Shown piece after piece: positions 39,923 through 48,902 of a stretch of 64,000 bases of DNA; the stretch's first letter is position 1; every line of letters begins with the position of its first letter. The notes beneath the pieces were generated by a model. It made no database searches. It saw nothing but the letters and a program-made list of their open reading frames with translations, and was not told the DNA's origin. A program made the position numbers and the translations under genes. The stretch lies in the sequence record NC_049340.1; one strand, 5' to 3'.

Positions 39923-41128
39923 TTAATTATAAACGTTACCAAGGTCTCCACCAGTTCTTTGGTTGTGCTTTAAACTTGGTATATCACTCATTTGACCTAG
40001 TGTTTGTCCTGCATTTATAACATCATCAACACCAAATCCATAAACATTACCTAAATATAAACCACTAACAGCACCTCGTATTCTTTCTATTGCATCAGAT
40101 GCTGTTGCTGTACCGAAGTCTTCAACTTTAGTACGCCACTTATCAACATCAAGAAAGTCATTTACATTTACTTTGGTTCTAATAATATCCACACCACTAC
40201 GACTTAATAGGTTTCTTTTAGAGAAAAATGAATCATCTGTAACAACATTATTTACATTTGTGGTAGCCATTGATGCTAATGCTTTACTTCCAATTTGTGC
40301 GTTACCTAATAGTGATTTAAATAAACCACTTATATCATATTGTTCAAATTTAATTGCCAAGTTATTAAGGTTTGCATCCGACCTATTATTTGAAACACTT
40401 TCAAAGAAAGCACCACCACTAGGTGCATCGAATTGACAATAACCTAAATCAAATAGTGTGTGATTTAATTGAGTGATATTCGTATTTTCAATTGTTTGTA
40501 GAAATTCTATAGATGATGCATTCAAATCACTAAATACTCTATAATCATATACGAATATTGACATTGAAAACTGCCTTAAATTCTTTGGTAATATCCACTT
40601 TCTATTGTGGTGGTCATATGCTATAGATTTATACATTTGCGCAATACTACCAATTTTATTATCTACAGTTTCAAGGCATAAAATATTTAGTTGATGTTCT
40701 TTATAAATTTCCTCGAATGGTTCTGTATATAATTCTTGCAATCCCTCAACATCCTGAAAAATCCATGGAGTTATTGAATTTACTTTAGAAAGTACATTAA
40801 TAAACCTTTTAAGTAATTCATACTTTTCTGTATATCCAATTCTTTTTAGGTATGCTAGAGCAGAATCAATATAAGTTTCATCAGCAAGTAAACCACTTGT
40901 TGCATCAAAATGAAAGAACAATTTAAATCCTGAATATGTTGGGTCTGTAAGTACTTTAAACGTATCAAGAGAATTATCAATATCAGATACTACATTAACA
41001 AAGTTCTCTATTCCGTAATTAGAATTGTAAAGAATATTTTTATTTTTGTAGTTTAATATTTTTGAATCGGTTAAACGTTTTATCAAAGATTTTTGACCCT
41101 CAGAAATTGGTGTTAGTAAATTAGACAT
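39923..41128 (-). CDS. probable tail tube initiator/baseplate-tube junction protein (gp48/54-like)
   Basis: Tail context; LNILCLETVDNKI...LRQFSMSIFV tube-like pattern; TAATACAT upstream on the minus strand. Confidence 0.45.
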   Translation of the reverse strand: MSNLLTPISEGQKSLIKRLTDSKILNYKNKNILYNSNYGIENFVNVVSDIDNSLDTFKVLTDPTYSGFKLFFHFDATSGLLADETYIDSALAYLKRIGYTEKYELLKRFINVLSKVNSITPWIFQDVEGLQELYTEPFEEIYKEHQLNILCLETVDNKIGSIAQMYKSIAYDHHNRKWILPKNLRQFSMSIFVYDYRVFSDLNASSIEFLQTIENTNITQLNHTLFDLGYCQFDAPSGGAFFESVSNNRSDANLNNLAIKFEQYDISGLFKSLLGNAQIGSKALASMATTNVNNVVTDDSFFSKRNLLSRSGVDIIRTKVNVNDFLDVDKWRTKVEDFGTATASDAIERIRGAVSGLYLGNVYGFGVDDVINAGQTLGQMSDIPSLKHNQRTGGDLGNVYN

Positions 41129-41173
41129 AGGTTTGTTTTATACTATGTATTATATAAAACAATTATACAAAAT

Positions 41174-42667
41174 ATGCTTATAAACGTAACACAACAAGAT
41201 GCATCAGTAACATTATCATATGTTAAGAATAATCTTATAGAGGTTAAGACCTATCCAGTTTATCAATATAATGGTATAGGTACATATGATTATCGTATTG
41301 CTAGATATGATGGTGACCCTGATATCGTAAATAACTTGGTTCATTATAAAGATGATAAGAAAGTTAAGCGTGTCATGTCATATAAATTCGATTTTGATAC
41401 ACTAAGAGAATTTATCACACAAGTAATACCTGAGGAAGATAGAAATGAAATATTCACACTAGAAATGCCTGGCGCATATAAATGTGATATTGAAATTGCT
41501 GTAGGTGATGGTGAGATATTCCCTGACCCATATTTAGCCGAAATGGTTATTGATAGTATTCAAATAACCGCACCTAACCTAAATACGGTAACAATTACAT
41601 GTAATCCAAGAGTTAAAAAAGCTGGTACACCTGAGGGTGATAAACAAATAAATGATATTGAAGATGCCATAAATAAGCATTTTGAACAAGTTGATTTTGT
41701 TAAAACATTAACTGATAGGATTAAGTATTCACATATTGTATATGATACGGAAACTGAAATGTTAGAACGTTGGTGGCGATTAATTAATACAACATTACAT
41801 GCTGTTGGATTTTGGAATGGTAGTGGATTTGATGTTCCATACTTATGGAATAGGTGTAAAAAATTAGGTGTTGATGTTGGTATGGGTTCACCAACTGGTG
41901 AAGTATCTAATCGTGAAATGTGGTGTAGACATAGACATATTGTTGATGATATGCAGATTGTTGAAAACTTCTCACATGATTTGGGAACAAAACAATCACT
42001 TTCATTAGATTATATTAGTAATAGAATTTTTGGGGTTGGTAAAATACCATATGATGGTAGTTTTAGTGACTTATATAATGGTTGTATTATTAGATATATG
42101 ACGTATGGTGCTGTTGATACCATATTACAACAATTAATTGAACAAAACCGAAAATACTCAGCAGGTTCTGAGGCGATGGCATATTATTGTAAAATACCGA
42201 TTGTTGATGTTGGTAAAACAACTGCATTAGTTCACGCTGTTATTTGGGATGAGTTATATAAGCAGGGTAAGATAAATGCTGAGGAATATTTCAAAAAAGA
42301 AAAAACACCGTATGGTGGTGGTTTTGTTAAACAGCCAACACGAAAGTTTTGTATGTATCCAGTTGGTGTTGATTTTTCTGCACTATATCCAAGAGTTATA
42401 CAAACATGTAATATATCTTTTGAGAATTATATGGGTAGAGTTCGTGATAAAAAACATGCTGAGGAATTACGTGCGCAGGGATATTTTGTTGCTGTAAGTG
42501 GAAACTATTACAAGAATGATAAAACATATTGTTTAAAATCGGTACAAGATAAGTTTCTATCTGAGCGATATTTGTATAAGGACTTACAGTTTGCAATATG
42601 GCAAGAGGTTGTTCCAACACTAGAGGCTGAATTAAAACGTAGGGGAATAAACCCAAAGAAATTATAA
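41174..42667 (+). CDS. DNA polymerase B, part 1 (3'-5' exonuclease + motif A)
   Basis: CDIE (ExoI), WNGSGFDVPYL (ExoII), YGAVD (ExoIII), YGGGFV, VDFSALYP (motif A); ends within the fingers. Confidence 0.9.
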   Translation: MLINVTQQDASVTLSYVKNNLIEVKTYPVYQYNGIGTYDYRIARYDGDPDIVNNLVHYKDDKKVKRVMSYKFDFDTLREFITQVIPEEDRNEIFTLEMPGAYKCDIEIAVGDGEIFPDPYLAEMVIDSIQITAPNLNTVTITCNPRVKKAGTPEGDKQINDIEDAINKHFEQVDFVKTLTDRIKYSHIVYDTETEMLERWWRLINTTLHAVGFWNGSGFDVPYLWNRCKKLGVDVGMGSPTGEVSNREMWCRHRHIVDDMQIVENFSHDLGTKQSLSLDYISNRIFGVGKIPYDGSFSDLYNGCIIRYMTYGAVDTILQQLIEQNRKYSAGSEAMAYYCKIPIVDVGKTTALVHAVIWDELYKQGKINAEEYFKKEKTPYGGGFVKQPTRKFCMYPVGVDFSALYPRVIQTCNISFENYMGRVRDKKHAEELRAQGYFVAVSGNYYKNDKTYCLKSVQDKFLSERYLYKDLQFAIWQEVVPTLEAELKRRGINPKKL

Positions 42668-42718
42668 ATTTTTACTAACATTGTTTAATACATTAAAACA
42701 AAAATAATTTTATTCAAA

Positions 42719-43558
42719 ATGGAAAGTACACAAATCGTAAAATTAAAAAACGTAAAGTTAAGTGAACTACAGACAGCATTCAAACGTTCTTTATCTATTG
42801 GTGGTGAAACATTAAATTTTAAAATCACACCAACATCAATAACAAATGTAGCTGAACATTCAAGTCAATCATTATATAAAAAATGGGAATTGTCTTTAGG
42901 CGATGTTTGTGATAGTGTTGATGGTCAATTCAGAGAATTAAAAGTTGCTATCTATAGTGGTAATGAATTTGTATCAAAGATTTTAGGATTCTTTGGACAA
43001 TTAGCTGACTTAGAAATTCAACACGAAAATGGTAATGTTAATAAAATTAACATCATTAAGTTAGATGAAAAAGGTAAAAGACTTTTAAGGATTGCATTAG
43101 TTACGGCATCTGTTACATCTTCATATAAAGAAATTGATTCTGATATGGTTTCAAACATCTTTAATCCTGATATGGAAACAAAGGCTAGTTTAATTTTATC
43201 ACCTGATGATTTAAAACAATTAAATAACTTAGCTAAGTTAACAACGAATCCTGAGGAACAAACAAACTATATAACTATAAAATCAGAGAATGGTCAATTA
43301 GTTGCTACTGATGGTGCATTTGATATTGCATTACGTGATAGAACAGAAGAGTTGGATGCTATTGAGATTGATAAAGAATTATTCTCATGTATTGAGCATG
43401 AAAATTATACTGCATCTGTTTATGACCTTGGTGAGAGTGGTATGTTATTATTAAATTCTGAAAATTCAAATTCACAAATTGCTGTAGTATTATTATCTGA
43501 TGCTGATGATTCGGTATCATGGGATGATTTTGAAACTGACACAAACTGGGATAATTAA
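42719..43558 (+). CDS. probable sliding clamp (gp45/PCNA-like)
   Basis: 279 aa two-domain size; LSPDDLKQL..LAKL and ITIKSENGQLVATD resemble T4 gp45; acidic tail; polymerase context. Confidence 0.55.
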   Translation: MESTQIVKLKNVKLSELQTAFKRSLSIGGETLNFKITPTSITNVAEHSSQSLYKKWELSLGDVCDSVDGQFRELKVAIYSGNEFVSKILGFFGQLADLEIQHENGNVNKINIIKLDEKGKRLLRIALVTASVTSSYKEIDSDMVSNIFNPDMETKASLILSPDDLKQLNNLAKLTTNPEEQTNYITIKSENGQLVATDGAFDIALRDRTEELDAIEIDKELFSCIEHENYTASVYDLGESGMLLLNSENSNSQIAVVLLSDADDSVSWDDFETDTNWDN

Positions 43559-43628
43559 TTTATGTAGTTTATTCTAAATATTATTAGGGCGCACTTCGTG
43601 CGCCCATTCATTAACTAAAACTATATAA

Positions 43629-44684
43629 ATGAGAGCAGAAGATGTGAATGATAGAATACATGAATTGGAGTCTAAAATATGCATTAATCCAATAAAATAT
43701 TTTGATGATATTAACACATCATGTCTAACCGAATTTGAATTAATTTATTTCAAAAAGTATTTAACTGATTACATTTCGAATAAGTTGAAAGATGGTGTTT
43801 TAATTGACCCAAAATCAAGAATCGGAATGAAGATGTTTAAGAATATTGAAATACTTTTGGATAAGTGTCTTTCTAGAGTTGAATTATATTCATGGAAACA
43901 TTGTGACCATACAATAAAGGGGTTCTTGGTTTATAACAAAATAAAAGAAATAAGATGTCCTAATTGCGGAACACTACAAAATCCACCAAAAAATATAAGT
44001 AGTTTTGTACATACATTTAATGATTTTAGAGTATATTTCAATGATTTATGTAATTCAAAACACACAAATATTTCAAGACAATTAACGAATTTGAAGAAAT
44101 ATGGATATGCATCACATTTCTCAACAAAAGAGACTCGTGAAAAAATCCGAAAAACTAATCTTATTAAATATGGTGTTGATAATCCAACAAAATATAAAGA
44201 AATAAATGATAGAATAATAGAAACAAAATTAAAAAGGTATGGTACATTAAGTTTTAATAAATATGTTAATGATGGAAACTTTGTTAGAAAGCAATATACA
44301 TCCAAAGAATGTGAACAATTTCTATCTACATATATAACACCATTATTTAAATATTATGGCGTGGATGATAACATAATGTTTGGTGATAAAGAGTATTCTG
44401 TATTAATACCAAATACATTTAACGATGTACTAAAACACGTAACAATGTATGATTTTTATTCACCAAAATACTCTATTATTTTTGAATATCATGGTTCATA
44501 TTGGCATAATAATGAAAAAGCCAAGATAAAGGATAGGGAGAAATTAGAATTTGCTAGAGATTATTTAGGGATTATGAACTATTTCACAATATGGGATTAT
44601 CAAGCAAAGGATAGTAAATTAATTAAAGAAGTACAGAACGAAATTATAAAAATAATAGATGAATATGAGAGCAGAGTTAGCTGA
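43629..44684 (+). mobile_element. free-standing Vsr-like (EDxHD) homing endonuclease
   Basis: TNLxKYG repeats; SKECEQF, YDFY, IFEYHGSYWH, FTIWD. Confidence 0.75.
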
Positions 44685-45486
44685 ATACAAAACCATGGTA
44701 GGTTCGGAATATAATAACCTAATGCAAAAAAATGAACATGATGACTTAATGAACATTCTAATTGCTGGTGATTATACTACAATGTCTGATGATGATTTGA
44801 TAAAGACATACAAACATGCAAAAAAGATGCAAGATTTTTATAAGATGATGCAACTTTGTTGTAAGCTATTATGTAATTCTGTATACGGTGGATTTGGTAC
44901 GGCATCATTACGATATTTTTTACAAGCTGTTGCATCAGATATTACTGCTGAGGGTAGAAATGTTACTCAGTTAGTTGATAAGATGGCAAATCAATATTTT
45001 CAAAAATCTTGGCAAAAGGATTCTAATTGGTTCAATGAGTTAAAAGATAAGTTTCCAAATATCATACCTGATTCATTACAAGCACCGCACCCAATCAAAA
45101 AAGACATATGTATTTATGCGGATACGGATAGTGTTGTTGGTGATTCTATACTAAGATTGTCTGATGGTAGGTCTATTAAAATAGAAGATTTATTTAAAGA
45201 ATCAAAATATACACATACAGACCATAAGGGTAATGAGTTTGCAACACCTACCGTTAATATACTAAATTATACTAAGGATAATGAGTTATATTATGCGAAA
45301 CCAAAACACATAGTTAGACATAAAGTATCCAAGGCAAAATGGAAGTTAAAGACCAAAAGTGGCAAAGAAATTATAGTCACTAACGACCATTCTATGATTG
45401 TGTTTAGAAGTGGCGAACAACTAACAGTTAAACCAAGTGAAATACTAAAGACTGATAAAATTTTAGTTATTAAAGATGGTAGATAA
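44659..45486 (+). CDS. DNA polymerase B, part 2 (motif B, motif C N-half) fused to split intein N-fragment
   Basis: KLLCNSVYGGFG, ITAEGR, IYADTD followed by the intein start SVVGDS. Confidence 0.9.
   Translation: MNMRAELAEYKTMVGSEYNNLMQKNEHDDLMNILIAGDYTTMSDDDLIKTYKHAKKMQDFYKMMQLCCKLLCNSVYGGFGTASLRYFLQAVASDITAEGRNVTQLVDKMANQYFQKSWQKDSNWFNELKDKFPNIIPDSLQAPHPIKKDICIYADTDSVVGDSILRLSDGRSIKIEDLFKESKYTHTDHKGNEFATPTVNILNYTKDNELYYAKPKHIVRHKVSKAKWKLKTKSGKEIIVTNDHSMIVFRSGEQLTVKPSEILKTDKILVIKDGR
45130..45483 (+). mobile_element. split intein N-fragment (118 aa, Ser1)
   Basis: SVVGDSILRL (block A), IIVTNDHS (block B); stop codon follows. Confidence 0.9.
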
Positions 45487-46519
45487 CATAAAGATTTTAA
45501 TAAATAAACATAGAACAACAAAAGATACCAAATATCTTTTGTTGTTGTTTAATTTATATGAAAAATATCATAATATAATTTTACCTAGATGTAAAGTTAC
45601 TGGCGGTCATATATATTGGTATGATACTCGATTCTCTTGGTATAATAACACATTAAATATAAAGGGAAAGTCCAGCTATTCAAATAAAATTGTTAATGGT
45701 AATAAGTATTATTTAACAGTATCTGAACATGGATTGTTTATTAAATTTGGTGACGATTTTAGTAGAATAAATAAACATAGGTTATTCAACACTATAAATA
45801 AATTAACTAAATTTTCTTTTGGCATAAATAACATTGATGCAAAAGCACAAAACAAAAAATGTGCAATAACATTGGATAATATGATTTCTAAATACGGTGT
45901 TGAAATAGGTACAGATAAATATAATGCCTATTGTGAAAAGCAAAGAATAACTTCAACTGATAAATATATTCGAAATAAGTTTGGTGAAGAATATTTAACA
46001 AAGGTTAAAGATGCTAAATCACATAATTTTAATTATTATCTTAGATTATCTAATGGTGATGTTGAGGTTGCCAAAGAATTACATAAAAAATACCATGAGC
46101 AAAGAATTAATAATATTGGTTCAATTTCAAAAAATTCTTTACACTTATTTAATACAATAATAAATAAATTCAATATTTTATCAGACTCATATTACGGTGA
46201 AAATGAATTTGGATTATATGATAAAGAGTTTAAGCGATATTATAAATATGACTTTACATCAACAAAATATAAATTCATTATAGAATTTAATGGTGATGTT
46301 TTTCATGGAAATCCAAAAATTTATAATGAAACTGATAGACCAAATTTTTTTAATACTAAAAAAACATGTTCTGAAATATGGGCATATGATAAACAAAAAA
46401 TAAATTTAGCTAAAGAGCATGGTTTTGATGTTTTTGTTGTATGGGAAAGTGAATTTAATAATGAATATATAGAACTAGTGAATAGATTGTTTAATACTAT
46501 AAAACATAAAATAAAATAG
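45476..46519 (+). mobile_element. free-standing Vsr-like (EDxHD) homing endonuclease between the intein halves
   Basis: ISKNSLHLF, YKYDF, IIEFNGDVFHGNP, VFVVWESE. Confidence 0.8.
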
Positions 46520-46520
46520 G

Positions 46521-47501
46521 ATGGAATATTTATTTGATGAAATAGAATCAATTGAGTGTATAGGTGAATTTGAAAATGAATTTGTATATGATATTGAAAT
46601 GGAAGACGAATCACACACATTCATAGCAAATGATATACTTGTACATAATTCAAATTATTTAACATTTGATGAGATATTCAAATCAATTGATTGTGATTAT
46701 GAAAATACGCCTACAAAAGAATGTGTTGATTTTATCGAATACTTCTTTAAGAATAAGATGAACGCAATGTATGATAAATTCCTAACAAAATACTATGATA
46801 GTAGAGGGTGTGACAACCATCATATTTTTGAATTAGAGGTTATTGGTGGGTATGGTGTATTTATTGCAAAAAAGAAGTATATCTTTAGTAAATTATGGGA
46901 TGATGGTAACTATGTTGCTAGTAAAGGTGGATTGAAGACAACAGGTGTTGAAATTATTCAATCAAGTACATCAAATTTTGTTAGGAGTAGTATAAAAACT
47001 TTTGTAAATTTGATATTCTCTAAAAGAGGGAAAATATCTAGTGATTTATTCTTTAATATGTGTAATGCACTTAGACGTAAATTAGAAACAGTACCGATTG
47101 ATGATATATCTAAAATTAGTGGACTAAAGACATACGATAAATATGTTGTTGAGTGGAAAGATAGAATTATTCTAGAAAAGAAATGTCCAGCACCAGTTAG
47201 AGGTGCAGTTAGATACAATCATTTAATCTATCAAAAAGGTTTGCAGAATAAGTATGCATACTTAAAGAATGGTATGAAGTGTAAAATGTATTATGATAAG
47301 CAAGGGAATCCATTTGCATACCATGATGAATCATTTCCACATGAAATTGCACCACCAATATCTAGAGAAATTCAGTTAGAGAAATTAATATTTTCACCAG
47401 TAAAACGATTGGTTAGTGGTGGAATGATTGAGGGAAGTTTATCAAACATGGGAACTGGTAAGAATTTACCAAGTTTTAAGAACATGTTTAAGAAGAAATA
47501 A
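46521..47501 (+). CDS. split intein C-fragment (43 aa, 46521-46649) fused to DNA polymerase B part 3 (palm/thumb)
   Basis: VYDIEMEDESHTFIANDILVHN|SNYL; AKKKY, LKTTGVEIIQSS. Confidence 0.9.
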   Translation: MEYLFDEIESIECIGEFENEFVYDIEMEDESHTFIANDILVHNSNYLTFDEIFKSIDCDYENTPTKECVDFIEYFFKNKMNAMYDKFLTKYYDSRGCDNHHIFELEVIGGYGVFIAKKKYIFSKLWDDGNYVASKGGLKTTGVEIIQSSTSNFVRSSIKTFVNLIFSKRGKISSDLFFNMCNALRRKLETVPIDDISKISGLKTYDKYVVEWKDRIILEKKCPAPVRGAVRYNHLIYQKGLQNKYAYLKNGMKCKMYYDKQGNPFAYHDESFPHEIAPPISREIQLEKLIFSPVKRLVSGGMIEGSLSNMGTGKNLPSFKNMFKKK

Positions 47502-47573
47502 TAAATATTTGGTGTTTTTATATTCTATACATAATATAAAGACATCAAATATTTAGAATTAAAAACAAACTAA

Positions 47574-48902
47574 ATGAAACAATACAAGAACATAGAGGAT
47601 GCTAGAGTTAGTATTCTAGAGGCTGTTAACCTTGGTTTATTAATTGAGAACATTAAACCATTAACAATGCAAGGTACTTCTACTAAGAAGCATTTAATTA
47701 AATTACAGAATGAGAATCAATTGACTTCAATGGTATCTGTTAGTACCGCAATTTTTGAGACTAAGCAAATACAAAACATTGATGAGCAATTAAAAAAATT
47801 CACCAACGAGGCTACAAATGCTATCTTAGACCAAGGTGTAAAGGCATCTATTGTTTATGCATTTGAATGTATTGAAAGACAAAGACAAACTGAAATTACC
47901 GAAAGTGCATTAAGTACTTTAGATACTTTGGTTGCATTATCTGAGTCTGATATTAAAAATAGTGTTCGTGCTGGAAAATTAAATCCATTTAGAACATTAC
48001 CATTTGTAACAAACATTATCGAATCATGTAAAATTGTTGAGGATGATGTTGTTGAAACAAATGAAACTGTTGTTAGTCATCCAGTATCTTATATTGAAGA
48101 GTCTGAGGGCGGTGTGTTCTTTAGAAGTGGTGATAAAGTTTATTGTATTAATGAAAGTGGTATTCGTGAGACATCTGCACCAAGTGAATCATTTTCATAC
48201 TTATCATCAATTGTTGAGAGTTTAACATATGCTGACAACAAACTATCTTATGTGCATGAATCATTAGGTTCATTTGAGATTGATAGTAAGGGATTAAGAA
48301 GAAAGAGTTCTGATGGTATTTTTGAATCATTTGATGCTTATGCATTCACAAACAAAATGAGTACTATCGTTGAGTCAATGAGTTACCGTGATGGTGTAGT
48401 TGGTAGAAGAGATAGAAAAGCTAATATTGCTGTATGTGATGCATTGGTTGCTGTTTCTGAAAACTTTTCTAATGTTGCACAATTAGATAATGTATTTGAG
48501 GCAGTTAATAAACGTAGTGGTGATAAAGTTTTATTTGTATGTAACGAAAATAACTATCACGTATTAACTGTTCAATCAATCAGACAAGCTAAAATAGTTG
48601 AATCATTTACTGATATTCGTGATGCGATTGCATTATTCGATAAGAAAGTAGGTGTTAACCTTAGTGAGCAATTATCTGAATTAGTTGCTGAGGCTGTTTC
48701 TGATGATGCACAAAAAGTAAAAGACATTACAGAGTGTAAAGAGTTAATAAAAGGTCTAAATGAACAAAAGGTTGATTTAGAAAAAGAAATTTCTGAATGT
48801 AAAAATGAAGAAATTAGAGAAGAATTTGTTGATACTCTTAAATTAGTTGAACAAACTATTATTGAAACACAAACAAAAATACAAGAATTAACAAGTATTT
48901 AA
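47574..48902 (+). CDS. probable head-associated (core/internal) protein
   Basis: About ten [ILV]xES motifs; C-terminal coiled coil; terminator at 48903-48928. Confidence 0.45.
   Translation: MKQYKNIEDARVSILEAVNLGLLIENIKPLTMQGTSTKKHLIKLQNENQLTSMVSVSTAIFETKQIQNIDEQLKKFTNEATNAILDQGVKASIVYAFECIERQRQTEITESALSTLDTLVALSESDIKNSVRAGKLNPFRTLPFVTNIIESCKIVEDDVVETNETVVSHPVSYIEESEGGVFFRSGDKVYCINESGIRETSAPSESFSYLSSIVESLTYADNKLSYVHESLGSFEIDSKGLRRKSSDGIFESFDAYAFTNKMSTIVESMSYRDGVVGRRDRKANIAVCDALVAVSENFSNVAQLDNVFEAVNKRSGDKVLFVCNENNYHVLTVQSIRQAKIVESFTDIRDAIALFDKKVGVNLSEQLSELVAEAVSDDAQKVKDITECKELIKGLNEQKVDLEKEISECKNEEIREEFVDTLKLVEQTIIETQTKIQELTSI

Follow-up and report, generated by a model that had tools for sequence, protein, structure and literature searches.

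How a phage can obtain a working replicase from a DNA polymerase (PolB) whose catalytic core is divided between separate genes is the question raised by positions 44659–47501 of the window, as we call the whole stretch of 64,000 nucleotides (nt) of record NC_049340.1 that was analyzed. The region from 41000 to 47600 is 100% identical to the record of the 224.7-kb jumbo phage PTm1 of Tenacibaculum (AP019524.1/NC_049340.1). Two pieces of PolB are almost certainly joined here by a naturally split, serine-based intein, with splicing expected from the behavior of the intein family, and the locus as a whole is very probably explained as the PTm1 copy of the split PolB1-type intein known from the Aeromonas phage Aes123. 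Three consecutive open reading frames (ORFs) on the plus strand, in successive frames (0, 1 and 2), make up the element. ORF4 (44659–45486, 275 amino acids (aa)) consists of the N-extein, a middle fragment of PolB corresponding to the gp43B1 extein (44659–45129, 157 aa) that ends in motif C (...IYADTD), followed by the N-terminal intein half (IntN; 45130–45483, 118 aa), which begins with Ser1 and is closed by the stop codon at 45484–45486. ORF6 (46521–47501, 326 aa) begins with the C-terminal intein half (IntC; 46521–46649, 43 aa), which starts MEYLFDE... and ends ...ILVHN, and continues with the C-extein, the C-terminal PolB fragment or gp43B2 extein (46650–47501, 283 aa), whose first residue is Ser+1 (SNYLTF...). 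Between the intein halves lies ORF5 (45476–46519, 347 aa), which encodes a putative free-standing homing endonuclease of the Vsr-like (EDxHD) type.

The intein halves and the exteins were each used separately as search queries. NCBIfam profile TIGR01445 (intein_Nterm) matches ORF4 residues 159–248 with 43.8 bits against a cut-off of 24.5, TIGR01443 (intein_Cterm) matches ORF6 residues 21–44 with 23.8 bits against a cut-off of 15.6, and the Pfam family Intein_splicing is covered from profile position 4 to 94 by ORF4 and from 118 to 155 by ORF6, so that the two genes hold complementary halves of one domain. ORF4 residues 155–269 align with PDB entry 9HTH, a crystal structure derived from the Aes123 PolB1 intein (E 7.5e-11), and ORF6 residues 5–47 with the PolB16 intein structures 8CPN and 8CPO (E 9e-5). 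The complete set of blocks (A, N2, NX, B/N3, N4, F and G) is found. Block A, SVVGDSILRLSD, occupies 45130–45165; intein position 1 is a serine that directly follows YADTD and aligns with Ser1 of Aes123 and of the relatives. The NX motif is R63-H64 (VRHKV, 45316–45321) and aligns with the K-H pair of Aes123; a His preceded by Arg or Lys in this motif is characteristic of Ser1 inteins (PMC10189870). The TNDH of block B/N3 (IntN residues 84–87, inside KEIIVTNDHSMIV and within 45364–45402) is invariant in alignments with Aes123 and relatives, and block N4 spans 45418–45468. In IntC, block F is VYDIEMEDESHTFI and block G is ANDILVHN, and the C-terminal HN together with Ser+1 (...ILVHN|SNY) is invariant in the IntC alignment. 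IntN is basic (isoelectric point (pI) 9.67, net charge +7.9) and contains no cysteine, and IntC is acidic (pI 4.05, net charge −14.3) with a single cysteine at position 13 (46557–46559), outside the catalytic blocks. A sequence-only reading of this DNA had placed a Ser1/Ser+1 split intein at these same two intervals, with serine as both nucleophiles, no cysteine in IntN, one non-catalytic cysteine in IntC and opposite charges on the two halves, and each of these points holds. The features support assignment of the halves to a class 1 (HINT) intein of the Ser1 type that is predicted to splice.

The exteins fit each other exactly. ORF4 reads ...CIYADTD|SVVGDS... and stops after 118 intein residues, and the corresponding junction in ORF6 is ...ILVHN|SNYLTF. 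Pfam DNA_pol_B covers ORF4 residues 54–160, and the C-extein aligns with residues 623–844 of RB69 gp43, with S44 of ORF6 falling on S624, directly after D623 of motif C. The intein-less metagenomic relatives that were compared (P0055, P0056 and P0076; 430–464 aa) are contiguous over the junction (Y[AC]DTDSNYL) and read VVYCDTDSNYLTWD, AVYADTDSNYLGFD and VIYCDTDSNYLTFD, respectively, across the site. Identity of ORF4 to these proteins is 58–60% and ends at DTD and the shared Ser, and that of ORF6 is 67–77% and begins at N43/S44. Since the extein homology ends at DTD and resumes at Ser, splicing would re-create DTDS exactly, neither adding nor dropping a residue, which is the YADTD|SNY join in motif C that the earlier reading had predicted. 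With the break placed within the catalytic motif DTDS, the polymerase most probably depends on splicing for its activity.

Three ORFs that occupy successive frames and abut or overlap one another might also arise from two frameshift errors in a gene that truly encodes a single uninterrupted intein containing an endonuclease domain, and a 1-nt homopolymer difference at 46868, in the C-terminal polymerase gene of the sister isolate PTm5, shows that these records are not free of indel errors or variants. The junctions themselves speak against such an artefact. The earlier reading had described coupled ATG codons at both of them, and this holds: at the first, the endonuclease gene begins (ATG at 45476) within the IntN gene, with an overlap of 11 nt, although at the second the IntC ATG (46521) lies 1 nt past the endonuclease TAG (46517–46519), adjacent to it and without overlap. 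The open frame extends only 3 codons upstream of the endonuclease ATG and 2 codons upstream of the IntC ATG, so that fusion of the ORFs would require one base to be removed (or two added) within 45467–45483 and again within 46515–46519, the two separate corrections that had been anticipated, and in these intervals of 17 and 5 nt the longest homopolymer is at most 3. PTm5 (AP019525), which is 99.9% identical to PTm1 over 41000–47600, is identical through both junctions; within 44600–47550 it differs from PTm1 only at 46756, 46868 and 46934.

Independent assemblies show the same arrangement. The metagenomic relatives L008 and L009 are laid out as polA (501 aa), a gene of 254 aa, B1 with IntN (248 aa), endonuclease (399 aa) and IntC with B2 (317 aa), and L010 repeats the N-terminal part of this layout. 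Their IntN sequences are 56–62% identical to that of PTm1 and stop at the same point after block N4, and the IntC of L009 is nearly the same as the PTm1 IntC, cysteine included. The junction spacings vary, however: PTm1 has its 11-nt overlap, and in L009 the first junction is a gap of 41 nt and the second an overlap of 35 nt. Aes123, AS-gz, CP21 and PA5oct likewise stop after N4 and carry a separate endonuclease ORF. Homologues of ORF4 number 461 in a collection of 5.8 billion proteins, and among the best 120 of these, whose ends were examined, 113 end 114–133 aa past DTD (median 118); Ser1 is present in 112 of these 113. The contiguous mini-intein of Campylobacter phage CC_R7 bridges exactly the loop, between blocks N4 and F, at which PTm1 breaks. 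The split in PTm1 is genuine and not a sequencing artefact, as the sequence-only reading had argued; the frameshift explanation, which is effectively refuted by the identity of the PTm5 junctions, the independent assemblies and the ends of the homologues, is so improbable that it can be set aside.

A genuine split need not mean that the halves splice. They could be non-splicing domains that associate non-covalently, with the active polymerase a complex of three chains, as gp43A and gp43B themselves associate non-covalently and as interaction domains assemble the fragmented NrdA of phage Aeh1 (PMC3045599); fragmented phage enzymes that come together with no splicing are also cited in PMC2677866. 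This is unlikely for PTm1, in which Ser1, the NX His, TNDH, the penultimate His, the terminal Asn and Ser+1 are all kept. Both TxxH and [KR]H occur in every one of the 114 homologous IntN fragments that were scored, and 113 of the 114 carry a net positive charge. Appendages of 118 and 43 aa inside the metal-binding DTDS motif C would moreover be hard to tolerate, and the orthologous Aes123 intein does splice (PMC11923092). Splicing by a split intein is the reading that we retain.

The crowding of the locus by two endonuclease genes and an intein could alternatively be taken as a sign of decay, in which a polymerase gene has been broken by selfish elements and replication has passed to another polymerase; the frameshift in the C-terminal gene of the PTm5 record would agree with this. 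On the evidence of this locus and its relatives, we regard such decay as very unlikely. The PTm1 exteins are intact and 58–77% identical to intein-less relatives, with motif C kept, the layout is conserved among many viable phages, and PTm1 is an isolated lytic phage. As to PTm5 itself, its differences from PTm1 at 46756 and 46934 are substitutions, and at 46868, inside the C-extein, it has one A fewer in a run of six (AP019525 ~171927). This A-run difference, which reflects either an error in sequencing or a genuine variant that inactivates the gene, is the reason why the C-terminal polymerase gene of PTm5 is recorded as two ORFs (PTm5_ORF-239 and ORF-240).

The gene between the halves also has a counterpart in Aes123. 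ORF5 shares 29% identity (E 4e-23) with the 'putative VSR endonuclease' encoded between the Aes123 intein halves and matches phrog_22677 over residues 66–345 (E 3e-32). D259, E270, H277 and D305 are invariant in a family alignment of 29 sequences, and in the profile alignment to Vsr the first three correspond to D51, F62 and H69, and that alignment also suggests, less certainly, an equivalence of D305 to Vsr D97. The pattern of these residues, with a Glu at the position of Vsr F62, is the one that Dassa et al. give for Vsr-like homing endonucleases (PMC2677866). In an AlphaFold2 (AF2) model the C-terminal domain is predicted with a local distance difference test score (pLDDT) above 90, and the top Foldseek matches in the PDB are Vsr itself (1VSR, E 0.012, probability 1.0; 1CW0) and the catalytic domain of I-Bth0305I (3R3P, probability 0.97, TMt 0.67). 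Pfam contains no match to ORF5, and phmmer found none in the PDB at E≤1. Homologues of ORF5 adjoin an IntN match in Lak megaphages, in Campylobacter phages CP21 and F379, in Aeromonas phages and in a Nitratidesulfovibrio phage. These observations support a Vsr-like (EDxHD-type) homing endonuclease, and the free-standing Vsr-like gene that had been proposed between the halves is thus upheld; its activity and mobility are predicted.

Several points weigh against the reading given here. Splicing in PTm1 itself, and the activity and mobility of the endonuclease, are what we infer from related systems. The two Pfam Intein_splicing matches score 32.1 and 22.0 bits, each below the gathering score of 35.8, as is expected because each ORF holds only half of the domain. 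PTm5 comes from the same laboratory as PTm1 and is 99.9% identical to it, so that taken alone it is a weak independent check. The match of ORF5 to Vsr is weak at the profile level (E 0.02–0.3; 0.1–0.3 with the family profile and 0.02 with NCBIfam), and its Foldseek matches have E values of 0.012–0.2, none reaching 1e-3. Two features described as frequent in fractured genes by Dassa et al. (2009; PMC2677866) are also absent from PTm1. A hairpin upstream of the endonuclease gene, which is not universal in such genes, was not detected (z −0.45 relative to shuffled sequence), and at the three gene junctions examined RNA folds were no better than shuffled (z −0.45 and −0.31 at the endonuclease junctions). 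Nor does the endonuclease gene run into the gene that follows it, which is likewise frequent but not universal; PTm1 has the 1-nt spacer before the IntC gene, whereas L009 has its 35-nt overlap at this point.

In the mechanism that we propose, the PolB replicase would be encoded by three genes and would comprise two chains, as the earlier reading had concluded and in agreement with gp43A, gp43B1 and gp43B2 of Aes123. The gp43A-like N-terminal subunit would remain a separate chain, while the C-terminal subunit would be made as two precursors, N-extein–IntN and IntC–C-extein. Charge attraction would bring basic IntN and acidic IntC together, and the pair would fold as a HINT domain of class 1, in line with the 'capture and collapse' shown for the Aes123 and DnaE inteins (PMC11923092, PMC12707363). 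Splicing through oxyesters would then be expected to proceed by an N–O acyl shift at Ser1, trans-esterification to Ser+1, cyclization of the terminal Asn (Asn43) and an O–N shift, yielding the joined product ...IYADTD-SNYLTF..., for which the expected junction peptide is DICIYADTDSNYLTFDEIFK. Motif C (DTDS, RB69 D621–S624) would thereby be restored in a gp43B chain of ~440 aa that acts with gp43A. The endonuclease gene would be a selfish passenger: its invasion of a contiguous mini-intein presumably gave rise to the split, and it may spread the whole cassette.

Comparison with Aes123 suggests more than the resemblance that the sequence-only reading had noted. The PolB1 intein of Aes123 is an active, naturally split intein with an IntN of 120 aa and an IntC of 39 aa; it is found in the T4-like Aeromonas salmonicida phages Aes123, Aes508 and AS-gz and is the basis of the engineered inteins CL and CLm (PMC11923092). 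The GenBank record of Aes123 (JN377899) gives the order gp43A, gp43B1-IntN, Vsr-like endonuclease and IntC-gp43B2, with explicit N-intein and C-intein notes. PTm1 shares with it the host protein, the insertion at DTD|S of motif C, the order of these four genes, the Ser1/Ser+1 pair, the terminal HN, the basic IntN and the acidic IntC, and its intein halves differ little in length from those of Aes123 (118 versus 120 aa for IntN, 43 versus 39 aa for IntC). The PTm1 intein is therefore best regarded, on sequence comparison, as an orthologous allele of the Aes123 PolB1 split intein and not merely as a similar one. The two are nevertheless well separated. Identity between the IntN sequences is only ~32%, IntC position 13 is Cys in PTm1 (and L009) and Leu in Aes123, the gp43A and gp43B1 genes that abut in Aes123 are separated in PTm1 by genes for a predicted clamp and a second endonuclease, and PTm1 is a jumbo phage infecting Bacteroidota whereas Aes123 is a T4-like phage of Aeromonas. 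The likeness to a cysteine-less intein that had been suggested also needs qualification, as the one cysteine of IntC means that the PTm1 intein is not strictly cysteine-less, and the existing GenBank annotation of the intein had been overlooked.

The layout agrees with the fractured genes of Dassa et al., to which the earlier reading had likened it. As described in PMC2677866, these consist of two host ORFs, each with half of a split intein, with a same-strand free-standing Vsr-like endonuclease gene between the halves, complementary charges on the halves and a break at the canonical endonuclease insertion site, all of which apply to PTm1, where the halves lie at the ends of separate ORFs. The PolB motif C site is not among the Global Ocean Sampling (GOS) loci from that paper that were considered here. 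Besides the Aeromonas phages, naturally split PolB inteins at the same site, accompanied by free-standing endonucleases, have been described in CP21 and marine metagenomes (PMC12707363) and in MIJ3 and PA5oct-type jumbo phages (PMC6892783). Like PTm1, MIJ3, PA5oct, CP21 PolB1, LCGC14 PolB2 and PolB16 have the DTD|S site, Ser1/Ser+1 and blocks A, N2, B, N4, F and G (PMC6892783, PMC12707363, PMC10189870). MIJ3 and PA5oct differ from PTm1 in having an HNH/Hef-like instead of a Vsr-like endonuclease and a polymerase without the additional A/B split, and PolB16 is atypically split, with an IntN of 15 aa. Contiguous mini-inteins also occur at this site, in Salicola phage SCTP-2 (PMC6892783) and in CC_R7 (PQ092953; L005 5220–5840), whose homologous intein has the same blocks and the same ...ILVHN|S end and lies in a single polymerase gene of 1035 aa without an endonuclease gene. 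A contiguous mini-intein of the CC_R7 type is presumably the ancestral state of the split cassette before its invasion.

The existence of the PTm1 split intein is already known, from GenBank product names and from a well-studied family, and the present analysis confirms it and its interpretation as correct. A literature search, which did not cover the original genome paper (Kawato et al.), found no paper on the PTm1 intein specifically. What is particular to PTm1 is the single IntC cysteine, the divergence from Aes123, the clamp and second endonuclease genes and the corrections to annotation given below. The gain for biology is small: the selfish cassette is widespread and well described, with hundreds of homologues in metagenomes, its Aeromonas-phage orthologue has already been characterized biochemically and structurally, and PTm1 adds one more case from a jumbo phage of Bacteroidota. 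For protein engineering, the PTm1 intein is a candidate addition to the few split inteins that are (nearly) cysteine-less, and because it is divergent from Aes123 its orthogonality to the Aes intein is plausible. The intein-less L007 and the intein-bearing L008, L009 and L010, with exteins 58–77% identical, provide naturally empty and filled sites, a presence/absence polymorphism among close relatives that is well suited to the study of homing of split-intein cassettes. That the IntN/Vsr-endonuclease/IntC cassette still homes as a unit in the lineage of marine Bacteroidota jumbo phages to which PTm1 belongs, and that the PTm1 intein is an efficient, Aes-orthogonal and oxidation-tolerant one, coming from a mesophilic marine host, is put forward as a tentative and rather doubtful proposal.

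Upstream of the intein-bearing genes, and on the same strand, lies the gene for the gp43A-like N-terminal subunit of PolB (ORF1, 41174–42667, 497 aa), which comprises the exonuclease domain and the start of the polymerase domain. It matches phrog_2062 over its full length (E 4e-72) and carries Pfam domains of the DNA_pol_B and exonuclease types; its match to RB69 gp43 spans residues 114–490, and by homology it stops where Aes123 gp43A does. In the intein-less L007 the order is polA (501 aa), dUTPase, genes of 83 and 280 aa, and polB (464 aa); as polA and polB are separate there without an intein, the separation of A from B is old and independent of the intein.

Two further plus-strand genes stand between ORF1 and ORF4. 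ORF2 (42719–43558, 279 aa; PTm1_ORF-237), located between the polymerase subunit genes, has no match in Pfam, PHROG or NCBIfam. Its AF2 model (predicted template modeling score (pTM) 0.75) retrieves PCNA clamps from the PDB with Foldseek (E 2e-10, probability 1.0), with 422 matches at E≤1e-3, and its position is kept in L007, L008 and L010. The model suggests that ORF2 encodes a PCNA/gp45-like protein that is probably the sliding clamp of the phage, or one of them. ORF3 (43629–44684, 351 aa), whose 3′ end overlaps ORF4 by 26 nt, is a second free-standing homing-endonuclease-like gene, with matches to Pfam DUF7487 and to PHROG families 3339 and 12131 ('homing endonuclease'); in hhalign, the core of its C-terminal part can be aligned with the family profile of the Vsr-like ORF5 (probability 81%, E 1.3e-5). 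It is missing from L007, L008 and L010, which have a dUTPase gene or nothing in this neighborhood, and it is a PTm1-specific insertion between the clamp gene and polB1. A causal role for ORF3 in the separation of A from B was considered and is ruled out, both by relatives that lack ORF3 and are split alike, with the clamp gene in between, and by the end of Aes123 gp43A at the same point. Apart from the weak similarity between the cores of ORF3 and ORF5, tblastn within the window revealed no paralogues or extra intein pieces.

The comparison also bears on the annotation of the record, in which two starts appear truncated, an IntC gene is unlabelled and a PCNA-like clamp is unannotated. GenBank names PTm1_ORF-236 and ORF-241 'DNA polymerase', ORF-237 and ORF-238 'hypothetical protein', ORF-239 'intein-containing split DNA polymerase precursor' and ORF-240 'VSR endonuclease'. 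ORF-241 carries IntC, and its label makes no mention of an intein. The start of ORF-239 is given as the ATG at 44695 (44722 in PTm5) and looks truncated; the homologue P0051 favors an N-terminal start of ORF4 at 44659 or 44665. The start given for ORF-240, a TTG at 45734, likewise looks truncated, and homology of P0002 from approximately residue 38, together with the coverage of phrog_22677, favors the ORF5 start at 45476.

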